A model generated the notes under the pieces. That model saw only the letters and a program-made list of their open reading frames with translations, had not been told where the DNA came from and searched no databases. A stretch of DNA of 63,323 nt, the filler included, from Perkinsus chesapeaki ATCC PRA-425 (lineage: Eukaryota > Protista > Perkinsozoa): NCBI GenBank assembly GCA_013115145.1. It is 4 parts of 4 records of this genome, joined end to end, with 100 filler letters (N's around TTAATTAATTAA, not from the genome) between each part and the next. Parts side by side here need not be neighbours in the genome. Positions count along the whole stretch, not along the records: positions 28,831 to 49,903 come from JAAPAO010000604.1; 3 more parts are not named here. One strand, 5' to 3'. Numbering within the stretch: the first letter of the stretch is position 1; each line of letters opens with the position of its first letter. Position numbers and translations under genes: made by a program. Positions 30,791 to 48,380 of this stretch are shown here, one piece after another.

Positions 30791-32780
30791 TCAGGAGGAA
30801 TCTTTCTTATTCCTGCGGACCCTCTTCGGGCTCGACCTGCTGCACTCTCGTACATAGTGTGAGCCACACAGAGCTACCTCTCTGATGAAGACTGCCCTGT
30901 TATCCTCTTTAGAAGCGAGCCAATCGAAGAGCCCACACCATTTAATATACCAGGAGATGATACTGCATTGCCTGAAATAACACAGATACGCCCATTTGTT
31001 AGAGTGTGCCGCCCCATGTGAAGACATATACAGAACATTCTATGGTATAGATAATAATAATACTCATCATAAGTGTATACAATTTACATATCACTATAAA
31101 TCGGATACTATCAATACTCGCGGAAAGATCTACATGACACATTCCAAGCACGTCACGTTGGACCGCCTCGAGAAGCAGGAATTGATAATGAAGTGACCAA
31201 AGTACGTTATGGAGAATACGAGATGGAATTCACGAGCGGAAGTATGTCGCAGTGAAATAAGTGATCCTGGCCGGGTTCGAACTTGCCTTTGGTGAAGGAT
31301 CTTTGCGCGGTGCTTTTCCTCCTCATAAACCTAACTCCCTTCACACTCTTTCTCTTCACACCCTTCACCCGTTTATCATTCAACTCTTGGCTTGGTGATG
31401 ATCTCAGACTCACTGGTCTAGAGGACGCCATCGATGAAAGCATGGAGGAACTCTCAGAGACAACAGTTGTGTTGTTAGCCGAGGGGCTCATCACCGAGCT
31501 TGCCAGGCTTGACCGATTCGCCGGAGAACTAAATAACGGAACAGCTCTAGCAACACTGAGGGGAATGGGACATCACCTGATCCTCCGGTGAAATTGGTCG
31601 TTCACCTGAGGACAATAAAAATGAAATTACTTGCGGAGTTAGTAGCTGCGCTGCAACAACGCCTGCGGTTGAAAATTAAACACCGACTAGTGACTAGTTT
31701 GTCCCAAAAAGCTGATAACGAAATACTAAAATATTAACATTTGCATGATTGGCAGTGTATTTTACAATGCTCTATCAGTAGCCTGAGTTGTACAACATTC
31801 CTTTAGTCGATAGCTCTTATGGTCAATCTATCTAGTTTGAACTCTATGATGCATATATTCTGACACTTACCTTTTCGAGGAAAAAGCCACCTCAGCCCTG
31901 TAAAACACACACGCGGCAATAATGTAGTTTCCAAGGCTCACAAACACCCTTACAGAGGTCTCCCCGCCGTTGCTGCCTTCCTTCCCTCTCAACTCCTTGA
32001 CCTCCTTCTCAAGACTCTCCACAACAGTTTTATGATAGTTAAGCTCATCTTGGCTCTGATTAAACAGAGTCTTCCAATACTCCACATCACATTCGAGTGA
32101 TTCCATCTCGCATTCTGAGAGACTGCCAATCGGACAATCGTCTCAGAGGAAGAATTCCAGTCTAATGCGACTTCATTATCAGACATAAAATGTCAACAAT
32201 CAACCCTTTCGAACGAGAACGACATGATGGAATAGCTTACGCTCAGATCGAGCGCTTCGCAGAGGCCTCACAGAGATGTCCTCCTTGAAGACCAACAAAT
32301 CTTCCTAATGTGACGATATATTATTGGAACAGCTAGAAGCAATCTTGCTAGACCAAAATGATGCGCCAAATTCGTTCCTCCTGGTAGGGCTCCATGACCC
32401 TCCACGGAAATGGTAGGGAGCTCATACCCGCACATTAATGCGGCTTCCGAATCCCGAACGAGAGGACGCTCACCTAAGAGATCAATGAGATCGTCCACTT
32501 CCTCCTTGCCATAGAAGGCCTTCCCTCTCTCCTCAACTTCATACGGTGCAAGCCTCACCATACAAGAGAACGTGCTTCCGCTGCTGCTACCAGTGCCGCG
32601 CTCCGACACACACCTGGCACCAAAATGCTGAGGTCAGTTATTCTCCGAATCTTTACTCCTCAGTGGGGTTGTCTTCTTGGGAAAGAACTCCGGGGTCGGA
32701 CACAGAGCGGACCTTCCCCTCGATCACGTCTTCTTGAGACTGCCAAATCTTGCGGAACAATTCTTAGATTGCCAAGATTA
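30791..32780 (-). CDS. Hypothetical multi-exon protein with coiled coil; boundaries approximate
   Basis: Coding-like exons with GT/AG edges, e.g. YWKTLFNQSQDELNYHKTVVESLEKEVKELR, VEERGKAFYGKEEVDDLIDLL and NDKRVKGVKRKSVKGVRF. No family recognised. Confidence 0.45.
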
Positions 32781-32943
32781 ACACTATCAACTCATCACCG
32801 CCCTTCCGATTATTAAACGTCATCGATAACAATGTATCAGCGACAGCAGCCCGCTTACGGCAACTGCCTTAATGTTATACAGTACGGCCAACAGGAGAGT
32901 AGGGTCGGATCGCCGAGCCCGCGATCGGTCATCTAATCGATTT

Positions 32944-35900
32944 CTAATGCCGACGGCTTCTCCCTCGACTGCGGCTCCGACTAGATCGCCTCGACCGTCT
33001 TGGAGAGTGATGCTCGCGCGGCTCCGGAGGGACCCCGCAAATTTGCATGTGCTTGTAGATGAGCAGCTTCCACATTTTGAGGACGAAAGACTGACAATGA
33101 TTAAAAATAATGATAAGTTTAATATCGAGGGAGATTGCAAGTAGAGCAGCGTAAAGCTGGGAATTTCGTCAACTGCGTGCCGCCGGCTTGAGCTGTAAAG
33201 GGATTGAGGCAACACAACAAGCTTGAGCCAAGATGGCTACATTAGCGATAGACCTCTCCTCTAGTGCACATAAGCCTCTAAAGTACTCAAAGCGGGGGAC
33301 TACTACAATTGAGTAAAATATGAGTAAAATGCGCACGCCTCTAAATTGCTCGATGCGAGCAGCCTCTGAAGATGATCGCTAATCTTAACATGAGCAACCA
33401 GAAGGGAAAGGTTGCGAGGCTTTACAGTTGCGTTATAGAAGAGCGCTTTCCCAGAATACCAAGCTATTCCAAGCGGTATCATTATTACTTCAGTTTCATC
33501 ATCTAAGAAAGGCTTAAGGTCGTTGATACACTGCTGCACTGGAGTCTCGGCATCCATCCTCTCCAGTATAAGATTAAGCATTCTAGGCTCCATCACACCT
33601 GAGAAAAGATTCTCCCGAGGTTGAATAGGATCAGAGGAGTGACTCTACTCAACAGCACTCAAGCCAAATCGGTCTGATCTAGGATAACCAAACGGAAGCC
33701 CCACAGGCATCTGTCAGCCTTTGGTTGCACACATTAATTTCCCCACCAAATATACCCTATCATGCTTGAAAAGGTAAAAAGAGATCTCGGACTTTGTTAT
33801 ATAGCAAAAAGCGGCGGCGCTTCCTTACCAAAGTATTCTGTGAGCTTCTTCTCCAACCATGGCTTCAATTGTAAGCGTAAAACATCAGACTCTTTAAGGG
33901 CATGCCAATCCAATTCGAAGTTCATTATTCCACTTCTAAAGATTAAGGATTACCAAACCCCAACAATTTTGTTATCTTACCTTGATCGAGGCATCGCCCG
34001 CAGGAGAGCTTGAGACTGCCGGAGAGCTGCTTCCTTAGCTTCGTGATCACGAGGCGCTAAAATAAAAATGTCACCCTGCTCAACAAGTAGCTCAAGTTGA
34101 TTGTTATCTACAACTTATCAAAACCGTATAAGTAACCTTCTATTTTCTCCCTTTCCCTATTGCCCTCGACTCTCACACATTTGTAATATATGAATATATC
34201 ACCAACGTTCCCACCTCGAGCACAAACTAGCACTCATAGATCTCATTGCTGAAAGCCGTTAATAATGCCAAAGGCGATCATGTTACTACCCTACTCCCAC
34301 AGACTTTGCAACTTTCCAACAGATACGATAGAAAAACTTTTGTGAGCCCCCTGTTGTAACTTCATTATGTGAACTCCGCATCGTCGTTTTACCCTCTCTA
34401 CCTTCCATCTGTTGTTGCTGTTGTATCCTTTGCTGCCTGACATGATCCTCAGCTCTGGTCTCAGCAAACATCTCCTTCGTTTTCTCGATGGATGAACCTG
34501 AGATACTCACCAATCGGAGCTACTGTACCAATGGCGCTCTATAAATTTTCATTTAACAACTATCGCTACCAGGATTTGCCTCATCTACATATTCCCTCCC
34601 AGGGGGCCATTGGGACATATAGGGCCAAACGAGGCCAGCGCACAAGAGCCGGAAGGATAGCCTCCGCATGGTAACGATTATACGACGATAATATACAACT
34701 ATAATAAATTTATTATGATAATAAAGAAGCTAATAGTCAATTATAACTACCAAATTCACTATTTCAGGTTACGGCTGCCAAACAGTGCACTCGCAGGTCC
34801 TATAAACCTATCCCCATATTCGCCGTCATTCCGCCTTACTACCGCTCTTCCTCTCAGCTTGCTGATCGCCACCAAATCCGAGCTTAGATCGATGATCAAT
34901 ATTTTGTTTCTTTCTCCGTCTAAGCTCCTGCATCTCCTCCAATAGTTGCCGTCTGGCCTCCTCTTCTCGCCTTTTTCGAGCCTCTTCTTCCTTCCTTCGT
35001 CGCTCCTCTTCCTCTTTAATCTCGCGGTGCTCGGCCGCTCGATCTCTGAAAGAATAGCCGTACAAAAATAACAAACAAACGAATGATCGAAAGACTTTGA
35101 TGCATCATACGTGACACGACAACGAGTACTAGTATTACTACAATAACGACTTTACTACACGCCTAACTTTGCCTGTTCAAGCCCTTGTTTATATCAGCAC
35201 CGTGGCTACACGGTAAAAGGATATAGGCCACAACAAGCCGCAATATACAACCCTGAATTCCCCTGTGCCCCTAGACATGTCACACTTCCATTGTGCAAAC
35301 TGTCCCCCTCCTACTCATCATCAAGCTCCTCTTCTCTTCTCCGATCCAACCGTCTCGAGCATCGTACAGGACCTTCATTCGGGTTGCCGTCCTAAGATCG
35401 CAGACGTGACAGACACAATAATCCAAATCGATCACCTGATCGATAAGCTCGAACCTCTCGCTCTCCTCCTGCATTTCCTCCTCGTTCTGTTTCTCCGACT
35501 CCAGCTCCCGATCCCTCTCGGTTCTTTCCCAGTTTCCTTTCCTCCTTTTATATCTACCAAATCTCATACCGCTCTCTCCTCCGAAATGCAGTACTCTTTC
35601 CTAATAGATTCCCTCAAATCCGCCCTTCGCCTCAGCCGTGCCATCTCCCTCGCCGAATCCCTATACCGTTTCGACAACGCCGACTGCGCAGCTCCGGACT
35701 CTCCACGGCCACTACGCTCGGCAGATGAGGCCCGACTTTTCCGGTCACCTCGAGCTCGGGATGCTTCCTAAAGATACTCCATCGCAATACATGGTAAAAA
35801 CCTTGACAGTGCGCACTCTCGAAGATACTCCTCCGGAAGTCTTCTCCTTCAACTGCTGCTCCTTCCATTCCTTATTCGCCTCAGTCACCAACGCTTCGAC

Positions 35901-37126
35901 GGCGGCCGCAGTTTCCTTCTCTCGTTGAATATCAATATCCTCCTGAAGACCACCGTCACTGCGCCACGAAACTCCCCCTTCTACCCTTGCTGTATAGTCA
36001 TCCACAAGCCTCTGGGCTCGTTCATCGCACTTGACCAGGATGCTCTTCCCACCGAGCTCCCGGCCATCGAGCAGCTCAATCGCCCTCCACACGCCACCAG
36101 CATCGGCAAACTCACAGTAGCCGAAGTTGAGCTCTTTCCCAGTAGAAGGGTCAATCTGTCGGCTCCAATTGACAACTGAGTAATGACAAGCTCCATATCG
36201 ACAACAAACGCAAAAAAAGCCACCTACTTGTTCCGCACTGGTCCAACAGTTTCCTAACAACAGAGTCATTGATAGCCAAACTGAGCCTGCCCACGTATGC
36301 CCGACAGGTCTCCTTCCTTGGGGGCGGCGCCGTCCTTATCGTCTCCTTCAATTCTACACTGTTATGTGACGGAGTAGCCTGCGGAAGGCCAGAGACCATT
36401 CCAGGAAACATGGAGGATTGAGATGACCCTGGGGGTGGTGGCGGCATGGCTCCACCGAAGAGGCCTGGCGGAGGGGCGGGCGGCTGAGGCAGACCTGGGA
36501 TATCTGAAATGAAGAGGAGAAATAGTGAATGACAAACCGACCATCGAGTGCAATTGCGAACGCTTTGGCAAAGCAAGGCGCCAGTCTCGACCTCTCGACT
36601 TTCTCGAAGCCTTCCTTTCAGACTTCCCCCCAGAAATAAGTGTTTCAGAGCCGGCCTTCTCACACAGTTTCTCTGGCATCGATGCCAGCTGCTGATGGCA
36701 TTTACTATATAACACATTTTTCCCACATAGACACCTTCGATGATGACTCATAGGTCCCCTGTATGAGGCCATGTCGATAATAAGTTCCTATCGGGCTCCA
36801 GAGCATCTGGAAACCTCTATTGCCCAACAGGAGATACGAAATAAGTAGTATCATTATTATTGTATTATAATTGTGTATATTTTTACTCAAGCCACAATAA
36901 ATGGTCATCCCCACTACTCACTCATGGGCATGTGTGGCATACCCGGTGGCATCATCCCTGGCATCATCCCTGGCATAGGGAACGACGGCGGTGGTCCTCC
37001 TCCACCTGGTGGAGGGGGAGGCGGAGGTGGAGGGAACTGTTGTTGATGCTGTTGTTGCTGGTCCGAGTTCGGGAAAGGGAACCCTCCAAAGCCCGCGGGG
37101 AACCCCATGCCTGGCGTTGGTAGCAT
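32944..37126 (-). CDS. RBM25: RBM25/Snu71 U1-associated splicing factor (Pro-rich, RRM, RE/RD repeat, PWI, RS tail)
   Basis: RRM RAYVGRLSL...WSRQIDPSTGKELNFGYCEFADAGGVWRAIELLDGRELGGKSILVKCD; RE-rich middle; PWI MLNLILERM...CINDLKPFLDDETE|SFVLKMWKLLIY; terminal RSRSRGRSRRH stop. Confidence 0.92.
33222..33240 (-). other. Relict spliced-leader sequence GTAGCCATCTTGGCTCAAG inside the last RBM25 intron
   Basis: Exact match to the last 19 nt of the Perkinsus long SL (ACCGTAGCCATCTTGGCTCAAG). Followed by CT, not a GT donor, so it is not an intact SL RNA gene. Confidence 0.85.
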
Positions 37127-37280
37127 TGTGGCAGCAAGGAAAACAATTAGCAGCCTATAACATATCCCAGCAACAACAGCAGCAGCGGCATTGGTACTAC
37201 ACGACACTGGATACTAGTGAGGTAGAAACATCATTAGGAATGATAGGCCACCACCACAATCAGCTTGGACATCAGTTATT

Positions 37281-40200
37281 CTACTCCCTCAACCACTCCA
37301 AGAATGGCTCCAAGGTAATCTCCAGCACGGATGCTGGGAAGGTCATATCGAAGTTCTCGAGCACCTGTGGGCAAGAGAAAGGTCCCGAGTTCGATCCCGG
37401 CACCTGTCATCTCACCTCAGGATGAAGCACACCCAAAATGCCTATGCAGACATCACCGACCATGACCTTTGCCTGTCGGCCCGGGAACATAGCCGAGTCG
37501 TTGATCTCCTCAAGATGGTATCGCCTCTGAACCCTCTTGTTCACATTCTCCTCGAAATCTGCTGCCAAGTTAAGTGACCACATGATTTGGTTCAGTAAAC
37601 CATGGATGGTCTCGAACCCACTAGTGGTGCCTGGAATGGGGACAGATTGCACAATCGCCACCCTCCCGCCTCCCTACCTGCAATGAGTGCTGCCAGCCTT
37701 CGCTCGTTACGAGCTCCGGTCTCAGCCAGGGAAGATTGTATAACAACATCAGATACCTGACAGCATTTCCAGTGAGTTAGCGGCGAGAGCGGTATGAGCC
37801 TATCCTGACCTCGAACAGCTTGATCGGAGGCGGGTTGTGCTTGTTTGACTGCAAAACCTTGAGGAGGCATGGAATCAAACTAGTTCGGCAAATCTCGAAA
37901 TCCCTGGTCTTAGGGTTGGACAGCTGCACCGGCACCGGGTTGATCTCATAAGGGTAATACTGGGACACCGCATCTGATAGAAAAACCGTATTCCACCACA
38001 ACTGGCATCGCGGGTATCACCGTGCGCAGCTAGCTTCGACTTCGGGCTCTTGGAGCCGACAGGCTGCTTCTGATAGGCTTTCGGGATCGGCTCGTTACCG
38101 GTGAGCTCCAGAACGACATCCCTGCCCAACGGTATGCGGCATGGCTTCACACCCAAAGGTCCCGGGTTCAATACCTCCTCATGAAATCATAGTTCTCCTT
38201 CGTATTTAACAACACCCATGTTAGACATTCACAGAACCCAGCCATGGCGCATTCCGACCTGATAGACAATTCCTACCACACTTCCTTCAAATCATCCACT
38301 AACCTCATCATGTCCGATAACCTATTGATAGGTTGCTCCTTAGGGAAGGTGACTGTGAGAGGGACAGTAGCATCCAAGTTGTTATAACCATACCTAACAA
38401 CAACAGAATAATGACGACAATAAAAAACAACACGACGAACAAATTATTAATGAGAATACAACGCGACAAAGTATACCGGGATATCGACCCTCCTCGAATG
38501 GTCACCGAGGCAAAGAAGAGGGACTATCACCATTTAGGGCGTACTAGTTATAAACCTCCATCACCTCTTCTCATTTTGTATCAGCAAGAGAGGATTATTA
38601 GCTCATTGTGATGGCAATTTCTCCGCTCGAACGCATGTCCTATTAGAGCCGGCCGCCCGAGTACCAATAATGATCAAAAGGGAAATGCTCATGATCATGG
38701 GCCGCCGCACAGTCTCCGCCAAATGATGAATGAGCATGGATAGTTGAGCAAGAGCGACGAGCATCCAACCCCACGCTTACGAAATAGCGAGATCCTCTAC
38801 AAGATCACACTCGTGCATGACATCGCTTCTCGTAACAGGTATGGTGACCTGCAATGTGTGGTTCGCTGCATCAATAACCTTCGATGGTAGGAACCTACAG
38901 CAAAGCCACATCGCAACCGAATCTTCATACCGCTCTTTTGCTACATCCTAGTCAGATCACTCGCAACCTGCTCATCATTGATTTTCTTCTCGATAGCGAG
39001 TGTCTTCCGAAGGTTCAATCCAGAGACCTCAATAACCCTCGAACTAAGGTCAGGGGTAATCATCGTCCTGCCAGCCCACTTCGAGGCATGGGCCGCCGAA
39101 TAAGTCACCGGCACGGGCTCCACCGTGAAGGGCTTCGCAGCATACTGTGAGAAGGCCGTCACCTGTCAAGGCCAAGAAAGTGCAACTCCCCTACCGATTT
39201 CCACAATTATTACCAACATGTTAACAGCGGTTTTGCCCTTAGTGAGATCAGTACATGTGCACTCGATGAAGACATCCCGAGTGTCCAATGTAATCTTGGA
39301 GAAATCAGAATTGATGATCGGAGGTAGAGACAGAATACGCCTGAAAGAGGTCCTCCCTCTCCAGCCTCAGACTCAGAATCGGCAGACTACTTTTTAGCAT
39401 CCCTAATAACAGGGTACAGCGGAGCGTCCTTTATGATAGGCAAATAGGCCTTCAGTTGTTGGTGATGGGACAGCACCTGACACAAAAGGGTGTGAAATGA
39501 CGAGCCTGGTATCATACTAATCATAAAAATTTCTACCGATATTATACGAATTCCCCACTAGCTTGTTAAGCGACAATATAGTTCCTCTGTAAAAGCACCA
39601 TACATAATACCACACAATAGCCTATAGGGATACTGCCACGGAGATAATAATTTAACACTCTATACCAGACCGGCCACCCTCTAGAGTGGCACGGAAATGT
39701 TCATTGATGACTCTGGCAGCAATGTTTTACCTCCATCATACGATTGCCGTCCATCTCCTCAGTCTGACCGAGTGGAATGAACTTGAATGAATCAGGTGGT
39801 AGAGCATCATAGGTGAAGGGACCTTGGATCTTAGAGAGGTCATGAGTACCTATCAACAATAATACGAAGAGGGCAGGCACCAACGACAATACGACAAGTC
39901 CGGGAAAATATAAAGCTACCAAAATTCCTCAAAGCAAATGATCTCGTCTGAAGGACACCCCTAACGACCATCTGGTCTCGTTCAACTTTAAAAAGCGTAC
40001 ACCAACACCGTGGGGTCAAGCATGGCAATATAGAGGGGATATGTGTCGAATCATCAGAGTTCATGATGATCGCGGAAGTACCGAAATCATGTATACCATC
40101 ACAACTACTCACCCATGCTTGCCAAAGTCCTCCTTCTGCAAATATTCTGATGAAGCTTATCTTGTAGGTCAATGAAACTCTGGTATCTAGCTTGATCGAA

Positions 40201-43540: not shown

Positions 43541-45657
43541 TCAAAGCTTGGGTATCATACGCGAAACACAACAATGCATCGTAAAGAGCTTAATCAGCAA
43601 CTGGCGGGGACCGAGGGATCATCTGGAGCTCTAAATTTTCTGGTGTATACGTGAAAGTCTGAATTGCACGAACAAGTGATATATCATGACTATGTTCAAT
43701 ATTATCAAAATGTCTAAGTATCATGGCCAAGAGTACAGTAGCTTCTTTCAAAGCCATAACTTGACCAGGACACTGTCGAGGGCCTCCACCGAATGCAAGA
43801 TGATCTCGGGCACGATCCTTGTCAATACCGCAACCATTGGACGATAGCCAACGTTCCGGCCTGAGTCAAGATAACTTGCCGGCAAGCTCTATCGCAGCCT
43901 TAGGGTATTTTACCCCTAGCAAGGAAAGCGACAGAGTACTCATAATTAGGAACCTATTAGGCGGCCAGAACATCAGCTTACCAAAAGGTTGTTCCGCCAC
44001 AGGACTCAGCAACCATAGCCTTGTGCAATAACGTCACAACAACGGCTCCGGGTAAGATATCTTGGCCAGCGAGTGTCGTATTGCGTATGCAAGCTTGGGG
44101 AAGAAACCCAGTAGCTGGTTTAAGCTGAATGCTAAGAACATATCACCGCACACGAACCGGTAAACTCACTCTTAGTGTTTCGAGAATACAACCCTGCGTA
44201 AAGGTGAGGAGCTCAAGATCAGCATCTACTGCTGGATCACGGCCCAGCTTATCAACTTCAACCCTGGCTTTGGTTTGGATATGTGGGTAAAGGCATAAAT
44301 AGTAAAGACACCACGCCACAGTAGTTGATGTGGTCTCACTACCAGCTATCAGAAATCTACTCATAGAGAGAAATGATACATCGAATCATGATAGACTGTC
44401 TCACGTGATAAGGTTGCCTTGTAAATCATCCTTCTCAAGATGCATTAACTTATCTAAAAGATCATCCCTTTCTTTGGATTCTCCTCGTATCTTCTCAGCT
44501 CGTCTCATCCCGATAATCTCTTCGCAAGTGGATCGAAGTCGTCTCACTCCTGTATGTAACTAAGCAACATAATGACCCAGAGACCCATCACTGATCCACC
44601 TTCCTTATCATTGGATTAAGATTCCATGGGAACCTATCTCGAGTCGCCCATGGAAGAGCTGCCCATTGCACGGCATATCCGGCACCAGCGAGGGAGTCCA
44701 TTATAGCTCCCTGGACATCTTCAAAGTGCTGGCTCAGTTGGATCTCTGAAAACTCAGTTTAAATTGATACGCTAAATCACGGCGGTGATCACAACTACTA
44801 CGGTATGACAGCAACTTACTCTCAGGATTCAAGAAATTGAAGTCCTTCCCTAGAGTCGCAGTACATAGGACATCTAGAGTACAAAGATGCAACAACTGTG
44901 TCGGAGACCAAACAATACGACCGTCCGGCTCACTGGCGAGGTGCTGTAGGCATCGCACCTACTGATAACGGGGTACCAGAATGGCGAAGCGTCGAGATGT
45001 ATTACTAGTTTAGCTGTAACTTTAGACATGGCATGGACCATAGCCGCCGAGTTGCTATCATTAAAAGCTGGAGCACCCAATCTTCTATTCCGCTTCCACT
45101 CATCTCCTTCAGTTGTAAACATACCCGAAATAGGCAACACCTTATCCTTATTGAAGGACCTCGTATAAGCGTTCGGCCGCTCCTTCAACACTTGGCGGAT
45201 TGAGTCTTGACTCGATACGACCACCATATCTTGTCCGAAAGCTCTGAATGATTGGTGAGCGAGCAGCATGAGCTCGAACTAGCATTTCAAAAGGCTGGTG
45301 TCACATGCCCTACCTGATATAGTAAATGCCACCATAGGTGTCGGCGAAGATTTCAAAGGCATAGAGACATTGCTCTAGAGTCCTCGGCAGAAACCCCCAG
45401 ATCGAGTTGAACTGACATACACTTTTAATGATGATGTGTTGTGTATTTGGTATGAGGCTTGATTGATCTATAAACCTCACCTGGGTGGGCCCACCGAATC
45501 GAGCGTGGAGATCGATGGTTGTTTGCTTTATACGTCTGAGAATTCTCAAGCCCAGTACCGAGATCACCCCAGTGACAAGCAACAAGCCACCACGTAAACC
45601 TAGGATGGCTTGGCACTTCCCTAACACTTTGTTAGTCACGGGGGATAGGATAGCCAT
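43541..45657 (-). CDS. Cytochrome P450, copy 1
   Basis: N-terminal TM anchor, GDEWKRNRR C-helix, FLIAGSETTS I-helix, ETLR, FW|PERW, FGGGPRQCPG haem motif. Confidence 0.92.
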
Positions 45658-46288: not shown

Positions 46289-48380
46289 CTACACATGACC
46301 GCTGCCGGTACGAGCGGACATACGAAGCTCCAGTCCTACGGGATGGTACGTGAAAGCCTGCATTCCACGCACAGCTGACAAATCGTGACTATGTTCAATA
46401 TTATCAAAATGTCGAAGTATCATGGCCAAGAGTACAGTGGCTTCTTTCAAAGCCATAACTTGACCAGGACACTGTCGAGGGCCTCCACCGAATGCAAGAT
46501 GATCTCGGGCACGATCCTTGTCAATACTGCAACCATTGGACGATAGCCAACGTTCCGGACTGAGAAACAAATATTCCCTCATCAGTTTCAGTAAGGGTAC
46601 AGATAGGCGGCTTGCTTCGAGGTTGCACTCCCACAATAGTGGACAGATTGCTGCGAGTTGCTTACACGTAACTAGTGCCACCTTCTTCCACAGCTTTCAT
46701 TGCCTTGCTCATCACCGTTAATACTATCGTACCAGGTAAGATTTCATACTTACCAAGTGTTGTTTTGATCATACACTTGTGGGAAAGCACCCTTCCTGGG
46801 AGTTCCAACTGCAATAAGCTGTGAAGAATACCACCAGCATACTGAAAAAGGGACTCACTCGGAGAGTCTCCAGAATACAGCATTGGGTGTATGGGAGGAG
46901 GTCGAGATCAGCATCTACTGCTGGATCACGGCCCAGCTTATCAACTTCATCTCTGGCTTTGGTTTGGATATTTGGGTAAAGGCATAAATAGTAAAGACAC
47001 CACGCCACAGTAGTTGATGTGGTCTCACTACCAGCTATCAGAAATCTACTCATAGAGAGAAATGATACATCGAATCATGATAGACTGTCTCACGTGATAA
47101 GGTTGCCATGTAAATCATCCTTCTCAAGATGCATTAACTTATCTAAAAGATCATCCCTTTCTTTAGATTCTCCTCGTATCTTCTCAGCTCGTCTCATCCC
47201 GATAATCTCTTCACAAGTGGATCGAAGTCGTCTCACTCCTGTATGTAACTGAGCAACATAATGACCCAGAGACCCATCAATGATCCACCTTCCTTATCAT
47301 TGGATTAAGATTCCATGGGAACCTATTTCGAGTCGCCCATGGAAGAATAGCTAAGTTCAGTGCGGCATCCCCACCAATCAGAAAATCCTCAATAGTCTGA
47401 CGCACTTCTTTAGAACTATTGTTCAGCTCTTCGCCTGACATCATAATAACCACCTAGCGGCCGGGCCCTAGCCTCTACGCAATTCATGACTCGTCATGAA
47501 GGCACGAAAAAGCAAGCGAAGATGCCATTCACCTTTCGGGTCCAAGAAATCAAAGTCAATGCCAAATGTAGTAGCACAGAGAACATCAAGAGTGCTCAAA
47601 GGGAGTAGCCGCGTCGGCGTCCATACAACATAACCATCGGAATCGTCAGCAAGATGTTGCAGATGGCTTATCTGATTATACGGAAAAGCCAAATACCTGG
47701 ATAAATTAATGTAAGACAAATTACTAGTTTAGCTGTAACTTTAGACATGGCAGGGACCATAGCCGCCGAGTTGCTATCATTAAAAGCTGGAGCACCCAAT
47801 CTTCTATTCCGCTTCCACTCATCTCCTTCAGTTGTAAGCATACCCGAGAATGGTAGTATCTTATCGTCGTTGAAGGACCTCGTGTAGGTATTCGGGCGAC
47901 TTCTCAGCACTTGGCGCATTAGGTCCTTATCAGAAACCACCACAAAGTCTGACCCGCAAACTCTGAAAGACCGCCACTACCAGGTCGAAAATCTCAACGA
48001 AAAGTCGCGTGAGATTAGCTAAGACTTACTTGATGTGGAAGATGCCTCCATAGCTATCCGAGAAGATATCCATGGCGTGCATGAAATGAGATGGGCCACT
48101 AGGAATAAGACCAAGAATACGGTTCGTCTAAAAAATTCCTTCCTAGATGACGGCAGCTGTCGTAGAGATCCTATGAGTTTAAAAACTCATTTGAACTTAC
48201 CCAGGTTGGCCCGCCAAATCGAGCGCGAAAATCATCGCTTTTTTTCTGGATAGGCTTGATGCTCTTAATAATTATAACGGTGACAATGCCGGCAGCCACG
48301 GTCAAGCCAATGCGACGATCGATAAACGTTCGGAGCCCCTCGGATCTTCTATATATACCCGAGAGCCAGGAGAAGTTCAT
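46289..48380 (-). CDS. Cytochrome P450, copy 2
   Basis: Same architecture: TM anchor, GDEWKRNRR, FLIAGSETTS, ETLR, YV|PERW, FGGGPRQCPG. Confidence 0.92.

Follow-up and report, generated by a model that had tools for sequence, protein, structure and literature searches.

The window, that is the whole stretch of 63,323 nt of Perkinsus chesapeaki DNA that was analysed, holds an RBM25-like gene on the minus strand of one of its pieces (Table 1). The RRM exon (an ORF of 174 amino acids), used as query in an exhaustive protein search, led to a 647-amino-acid ortholog in P. olseni with 85% identity, and a word search with this protein returned P. olseni KAF4696701.1, P. marinus XP_002772350.1 and P. 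chesapeaki KAF4656344.1 ("RNA-binding protein 25"). The Pfam domains were taken from the deposited P. chesapeaki model (P0151, 810 amino acids), where RRM_1 covers residues 138-206 (2.3e-8) and PWI residues 553-616 (3.3e-10); the exon pieces of the window were scanned singly and were in agreement. With the RRM, the Glu/Arg-rich region and the C-terminal PWI domain all in order, the predicted protein identifies the host gene as RBM25. Its last intron extends from the GT donor at 33488-33487 to the AG acceptor at 33092-33091 (minus strand), and the exons around it end and begin with ...DDETE / SFVLKMWK.... In the deposited model the sequence reads DDETESFVLK, and residue 603 is the last before the junction. 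Since this residue lies within the PWI match, the intron splits the PWI domain. A 398-nt intron interrupting the PWI domain of RBM25 between DDETE and SFVLK had been described in an earlier note on this DNA, and bounds, GT..AG ends and junction all agree with that description.

Table 1. Features of the RBM25 locus and of the spliced-leader (SL) relic in its last intron; positions refer to the window.
Feature	Position	Strand	Remarks
RBM25-like gene, FOL47_009028 / KAF4656344.1	32944..37126	minus	proline-rich N-terminus, RRM, Glu/Arg-rich region, C-terminal PWI
Penultimate coding exon (...VMEPRMLNLILERMDAETPVQQCINDLKPFLDDETE)	33489..33598	minus	middle of PWI domain
Last intron of RBM25 gene	33091..33488	minus	398 nt, GT..AG, phase 0; position kept in P. 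olseni and P. marinus
54-nt repeat core	33202..33255	minus	15 nt upstream + SL 19-mer + 20 nt downstream; exact in at least one other P. chesapeaki locus
SL relic AATGTAGCCATCTTGGCTCAAG	33222..33243	minus	20/22 to L-type SL; exact 19-mer 33222-33240
Possible second, decayed SL relic CTTGTTGTGTTGCCTCAAT	33203..33221	minus	TTGCCTCAA 8/9 to SL 3′ end; suggestive only
Possible third, decayed SL relic, ends GCTCAAG	33187..33202	minus	16-nt unit; suggestive only
Last coding exon (SFVLKMWKLLIYKHMQICGVPPEP..., RS-rich tail)	32944..33090	minus	stop codon 32944-32946

Several further observations concern the gene and its surroundings. The deposited P. chesapeaki model overruns the RBM25 stop codon by an out-of-frame splice (32609-32946, minus strand) and is thereby fused to a downstream coiled-coil gene. 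The C-terminus encoded by the last P. chesapeaki exon, with the RS-rich end ...SRSRSRGRSRRH* and the stop, matches that of P. marinus, so that this fusion looks like an annotation artefact. Two P. olseni models (P0156 and P0158) contain a fusion of this kind as well. The two putative RNA runs of P. chesapeaki gave coverage of the downstream neighbour gene only. There, a contig joins 32114 to 32474 (within 31952-32588) and skips 359 nt, which are bounded on the plus strand by CT..AC and correspond to a GT..AG intron in the neighbour gene on the minus strand; this is the sole transcript evidence in 31800-37400. Close to the ends of the RBM25 intron, a 10-nt inverted repeat (AATAATGATA / TATCATTATT) is located at 33477-33486 and 33106-33115, the distances being 2 nt to the donor and 15 nt to the acceptor. 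In the predicted fold, the intron ends pair via this repeat; it could be due to chance in AT-rich sequence, and no counterpart was found in the orthologous introns. Farther away, three collinear direct repeats of 83-94% identity, spaced by about 2.7 kb, connect 43612-45251 with 46311-47970 and point to the tandem duplication of at least about 1.6 kb.

Within the last intron of RBM25 lies a short stretch corresponding to the spliced leader of Perkinsus. The 19-mer GTAGCCATCTTGGCTCAAG has a single exact match in the window (33222-33240, minus strand), in sense orientation relative to the RBM25 gene; window-wide, no further match was found at up to three mismatches (mean of 0.01 in shuffles). By chance, about 1.5e-7 exact matches are expected per 21,073-nt piece and 3.6e-7 per whole window. 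Both the sense-oriented 19-mer in the intron and a negligible chance expectation (put at 5e-7 in the window) had been part of the earlier note; the former is present exactly as described there and the latter was upheld on recalculation. The L-type SL of Perkinsus is the 22-nt sequence ACCGTAGCCATCTTGGCTCAAG (PMC9399869; PMC3101222), and the 19-mer equals its nucleotides 4-22 without a mismatch (19/19). In the full SL register, 20 of the 22 positions agree, the relic having AAT where the SL has ACC. The SL RNA of P. chesapeaki is known to hybridise with L-type SL exon probes (PMC3101222). The stretch is nearly identical to the organism's own SL exon, as is characteristic of a genomic SL relic, and it keeps the putative Sm site AUCUUGG.

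The sequence that follows the relic has little in common with an SL RNA gene or with the start of a message. Instead of a GT donor, CTTG stands directly after it, and the 131 nt from the relic to the 3′ splice site are free of ATG. An ORF downstream of the relic was not found either; the position at the 5′ end of an initially intronless ORF, which is expected of an SL relic, is not seen here, the relic being located inside an intron. Without a GT donor the relic cannot act as an SL RNA or donate its leader. A T-tract at about +60, as expected of an SL RNA gene, is absent, as is any similarity to the SL intron of P. marinus, which starts with GTARATATCAG.... For the relic and the intron, a search of Rfam with a permissive E-value gave no match, the only hit being a chance-level snoRNA match elsewhere. 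A functional SL RNA gene was rejected on these grounds, namely CTTG instead of GT after the exon-like part, no T-tract near +60 and no Rfam match. Folding of 141 nt (z = +0.48) and of the whole intron (z = -0.97) was not significant in comparison with shuffles. Poly(A) near the relic, a target-site duplication (tandem-repeat and direct-repeat scans) and terminal repeats flanking the relic piece were looked for and not found, and the 21-kb piece contains no second copy of the element. A scan for bacterial promoters and terminators gave nothing, with models that are inapplicable to this host.

Two units downstream of the relic may themselves be related to the SL. The intact relic is directly followed by a 19-nt unit holding TTGCCTCAA, which matches TTGGCTCAA at 8 of 9 positions and was equalled by 188 of 5000 shuffles (p ~0.04). 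Next comes a 16-nt unit with a second GCTCAAG at 33187-33193, 28 nt past the end of the first motif, equalled by 175 of 5000 shuffles (p ~0.04). An ungapped profile places both SL-3′-end-like units in register after the relic. In a way that is suggestive only, they resemble the stacked, decaying relics of recycled dinoflagellate retrogenes (PMC5585692). A second GCTCAAG about 30 nt downstream, as well as the lack of a GT donor and of an ATG-led ORF after the relic, had been pointed out before and were found again here.

The same intron was compared at four orthologous loci, two haplotypes of P. olseni (L001 and L075) and two copies in P. marinus (L002 and L074). All four have an intron at the identical codon boundary and in the same phase (...DDETE / TFVLKMWK...), with lengths of 295 (L001) and 216 nt (L075) in P. 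olseni and 308 nt in both P. marinus copies, so that the 398-nt intron of P. chesapeaki exceeds its orthologues by 90-180 nt. An SL-like stretch was found in none of the four; the best matches reached 10-12 of 22 positions, which is the background of this DNA. Alignment of the introns from the three species, meant to delimit the insert, showed that they are saturated and do not align. Judged from this comparison, the intron is an old one, and the SL piece would either be specific for the P. chesapeaki lineage or have been lost without trace elsewhere. A check for conservation, in P. olseni among others, had been proposed, and the absence of the relic from the P. olseni and P. marinus introns (best 10-12/22) leaves a conserved regulatory role unsupported; by the reasoning of the earlier note itself, it counts against the regulatory idea only. 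Within P. olseni, the intron differs by 79 nt between two assemblies (L075:12916-13131 with 216 nt, L001:3098-3392 with 295 nt), and intron indels are accordingly frequent within the species. An introner or another invasive intronic element was considered and rejected: the intron site is common to three species, the intron is ancient and only 54 nt of it are multi-copy, while as to the hallmarks of introners, the inverted repeat at the intron ends could be chance and a target duplication is absent.

The presence of the relic in genomic DNA is backed by Logan contigs from two studies (X1 from 2020 and X2 from 2022), one or both of which may be the source data of the assembly itself. Compared over 31800-37400, the contigs contain the motif with both flanks and zero differences. 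The 19-mer, for which confirmation by genomic reads had been called for, is thus seen with identical junction k-mers in both studies. Copy number and element boundaries were derived from the contig graph of the two runs. The contigs break exactly at the motif; in X1, one ends at 33231 and another starts at 33226. Both are bridged without differences by a 54-nt unitig with a depth of 225, compared with 116 on either side, and two alternative flanks with a depth of about 100-104 also leave this unitig. From the double depth and the alternative flanks it follows that a second locus has exactly the same 54 nt. An allele was rejected as source of the double depth, given that the flanking contigs keep a steady depth of 116 for kilobases. 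The contig of a third locus (depth 65) can be aligned with 33222-33264 at the cost of two mismatches and two gaps. In X2, the downstream flank is found, with one additional base, in three contigs whose depths add up to 98.4 (local baseline about 14). Whereas the homology of a simple relic would start at the 5′ end of the SL, the copies have in common 15-24 nt upstream of it (at least two other loci) and about 20 nt downstream. The loci share different sub-parts and not one unit with fixed ends. As the flanks carry consecutive RBM25 exons around the conserved intron site, the join in the assembly is right. In X2, a second contig over the PWI exons (33523-33863) is about 10% divergent, with a depth of about 7 compared with 14 and with the intervening intron replaced or skipped; it could represent a divergent haplotype, a paralog or a second strain in the sample.

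Reverse-transcribed, SL-capped mRNA is the accepted ultimate source of genomic SL relics. Taken together, we consider it probable that the RBM25 intron contains a young, neutral relic that was copied from an existing relic-bearing locus. The SL sequence would ultimately have entered the DNA via the 5′ end of a reverse-transcribed, trans-spliced mRNA and would have reached the old and conserved intron in the P. chesapeaki lineage within an insert of about 54-100 nt. This insert is one of a small family of near-identical pieces in the P. chesapeaki genome. The intronic copy may derive from an existing relic-bearing locus or from its unprocessed transcript, for example as a DNA or cDNA fragment captured at a break. 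A relic-bearing source locus is most likely because the homology between the copies begins upstream of the SL. The relic would be removed along with the intron and, as suggested by the lack of conservation and of structure, most likely rides along as a neutral passenger. The perfect 19-mer would fit a young insertion, of which it is expected, and is also compatible with constraint.

A mature, SL-capped mRNA 5′ end that was reverse-transcribed and inserted straight into the RBM25 intron is the strongest alternative, although an unlikely one, and fits less well than a copy of a relic-bearing locus. The SL identity is near perfect, as such an event would leave it, several copies have the same stretch after the SL, as a common 5′ UTR would, and the possible tandem relics downstream also point in this direction. 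The loss of the first three nucleotides fits incomplete reverse transcription at the modified cap, and incomplete SLs are common in cDNA (PMC2868825). However, the 15-24 nt upstream of the SL are common to other loci, where homology derived from an mRNA should stop, and ORF, poly(A) and target duplication were not found. Target-primed retroposition normally keeps 3′ ends and not 5′ ends, so that the kept 5′ end is contrary to the usual outcome. Direct insertion would go with a P. chesapeaki mRNA whose 5′ UTR starts with CTTGTTGTGTTGCC, and it is possible if the other loci are secondary copies. The retro-insertion given as one of two readings in the earlier note is therefore retained in part: there is a genuine SL relic in sense orientation in the PWI-splitting intron (19/19, 20/22), but not a simple mRNA 5′ end, in view of the upstream homology, the three differing first bases and the lack of poly(A), duplication and ORF.

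It is rather improbable that the relic derives, as a fragment or pseudogene, from an SL RNA gene that was copied as DNA, or that it forms part of an undescribed SL-derived mobile element. Homology between the copies reaches upstream of the exon-like part, as it does in gene-derived copies, and the piece is short and dispersed. On the other hand, the relic is not followed by a GT donor or a start similar to GTARATATCAG..., nor by a T-tract at the expected 60 nt. The sub-parts vary between the loci, and terminal repeats and target duplication are missing. A fragment of this origin would go with an SL RNA gene whose upstream sequence is like AGGTCTATCGCTAAT.

The second reading of the earlier note, a regulatory SL mimic, found no support, as the orthologous introns reach only 10-12/22 and neither a significant fold nor an Rfam match was obtained. 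We regard it as very improbable that the relic is a functional intronic mimic, which would tune the RBM25 pre-mRNA as a decoy with its Sm site or by means of GTAG/CC as a cryptic acceptor for splicing or trans-splicing. In its favour, the putative Sm site AUCUUGG is kept together with the AG, which serves as re-splicing acceptor in dinoflagellate relics (PMC5585692). The relic is also in sense orientation in a splicing-factor gene, and the stretch after it contains no ATG up to the in-frame one at 33075 in the last exon. Against this stand the absence of the relic from four orthologous introns in two species, the lack of a significant fold (z = +0.48 and -0.97) and the presence of the same piece at other loci, and an ATG-free stretch of about 150 nt is expected by chance in about 1 in 10 cases. 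Slighter still is the chance that GTAG/CC is in actual use as an internal acceptor, in cis-splicing or in SL trans-splicing, or that the Sm site is a decoy, with part of the RBM25 pre-mRNA being diverted. If so, a truncated message and an SL-capped RNA would arise, the latter with its first ATG, at 33075, at the start of the 43-codon RS-rich tail; a retroposed leader would then have become, recently and in this lineage alone, a brake on a splicing factor. That the motif matches by chance, or is an artefact of assembly or contamination, is hardly credible: de Bruijn contigs do branch at the motif and short-read graphs alone do not fix the pairing of flanks, but consecutive RBM25 exons lie in the right order around an intron site conserved in three species, the 54-nt repeat is shorter than a read, the junction k-mers are identical in two studies, and the chance expectation is 1.5e-7.

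As a young relic copied within the genome, the locus would imply that the copying of SL-tagged sequence within a Perkinsus genome is ongoing and that its possible targets include introns of essential, intron-rich genes as well as sites upstream of retrogenes. Present in P. chesapeaki and found neither in P. olseni nor in P. marinus, it offers a clean lineage-specific marker. For annotation, some caution is advisable, since an SL match in genomic DNA does not amount to an SL RNA gene, nor does it reliably indicate where a gene has its 5′ end. A new mechanism is not revealed by the relic.

In comparison with the functional SL RNA genes of Perkinsus, whose transcripts have 80-83 nt, the relic has in common the exon nucleotides 4-22 and the putative Sm site AUCUUGG, whereas it lacks the GT donor, the SL intron and the T-tract terminator and differs in the first three bases.

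Relict DinoSL tags of dinoflagellate retrogenes were reportedly described by Slamovits and Keeling in 2008. Truncated and decayed further relics follow the tag in multiply recycled retrogenes (Song et al. 2017, PMC5585692). The relic in RBM25 resembles these tags in being a DNA-encoded SL with possible decayed relics after it and a presumed origin from a reverse-transcribed, trans-spliced mRNA. However, DinoSL tags precede an ORF by at most about 500 bp and are the mark of a complete retrocopied gene, whereas no ORF follows the relic, which is hosted by an intron in an unrelated gene rich in introns.

Among public metagenome contigs, we detected the exact 19-mer in 71 contigs representing 58 distinct contexts. 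CC precedes GTAG in 47 of the 58, 33 of these 47 having TCC, and in most contexts an ORF of at least 80 codons lies within 400 nt after the 19-mer. A GT follows the 19-mer in only three contexts, which look like true SL RNA genes. In these (L057:1364-1440, L011:576-640 and L004:840-900), a Perkinsus-type SL exon (TCTT, not TTTT) precedes the GT, and two of the three have a T-tract some 25-35 nt farther on; all three resemble SL RNA genes of uncultured relatives, shorter than the 80-83 nt Perkinsus SL RNA. The environmental contigs share with our locus the identical 19-mer in genomic sequence and a varied downstream sequence, some having second relics as well; the relic in RBM25 is atypical among them in having no CC and no downstream ORF and in being intronic. 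DNA-encoded leaders are thus commonplace in the Perkinsus clade.

The closest parallel is found in the P. marinus genome, where more than 100 sites contain a recognisable SL without an SL intron (Zhang et al. 2011, PMC3101222); numerous genomic copies of the 22-nt SL were also reported by Joseph et al. 2010. The P. marinus sites are mostly T-initial, with variable downstream sequence, some of them lie in protein-coding genes, and none yields an SL-RNA-like transcript (PMC3101222). Like these, the relic described here is an L-type SL exon without SL intron. It differs from them in that it belongs to P. chesapeaki, starts with AAT instead of the usual T/ACC, and lies within a conserved spliceosomal intron with flanks that are common to other copies on both sides. 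The relic is therefore real and ordinary, of a kind already reported in Perkinsus with the more than 100 SL copies of P. marinus.
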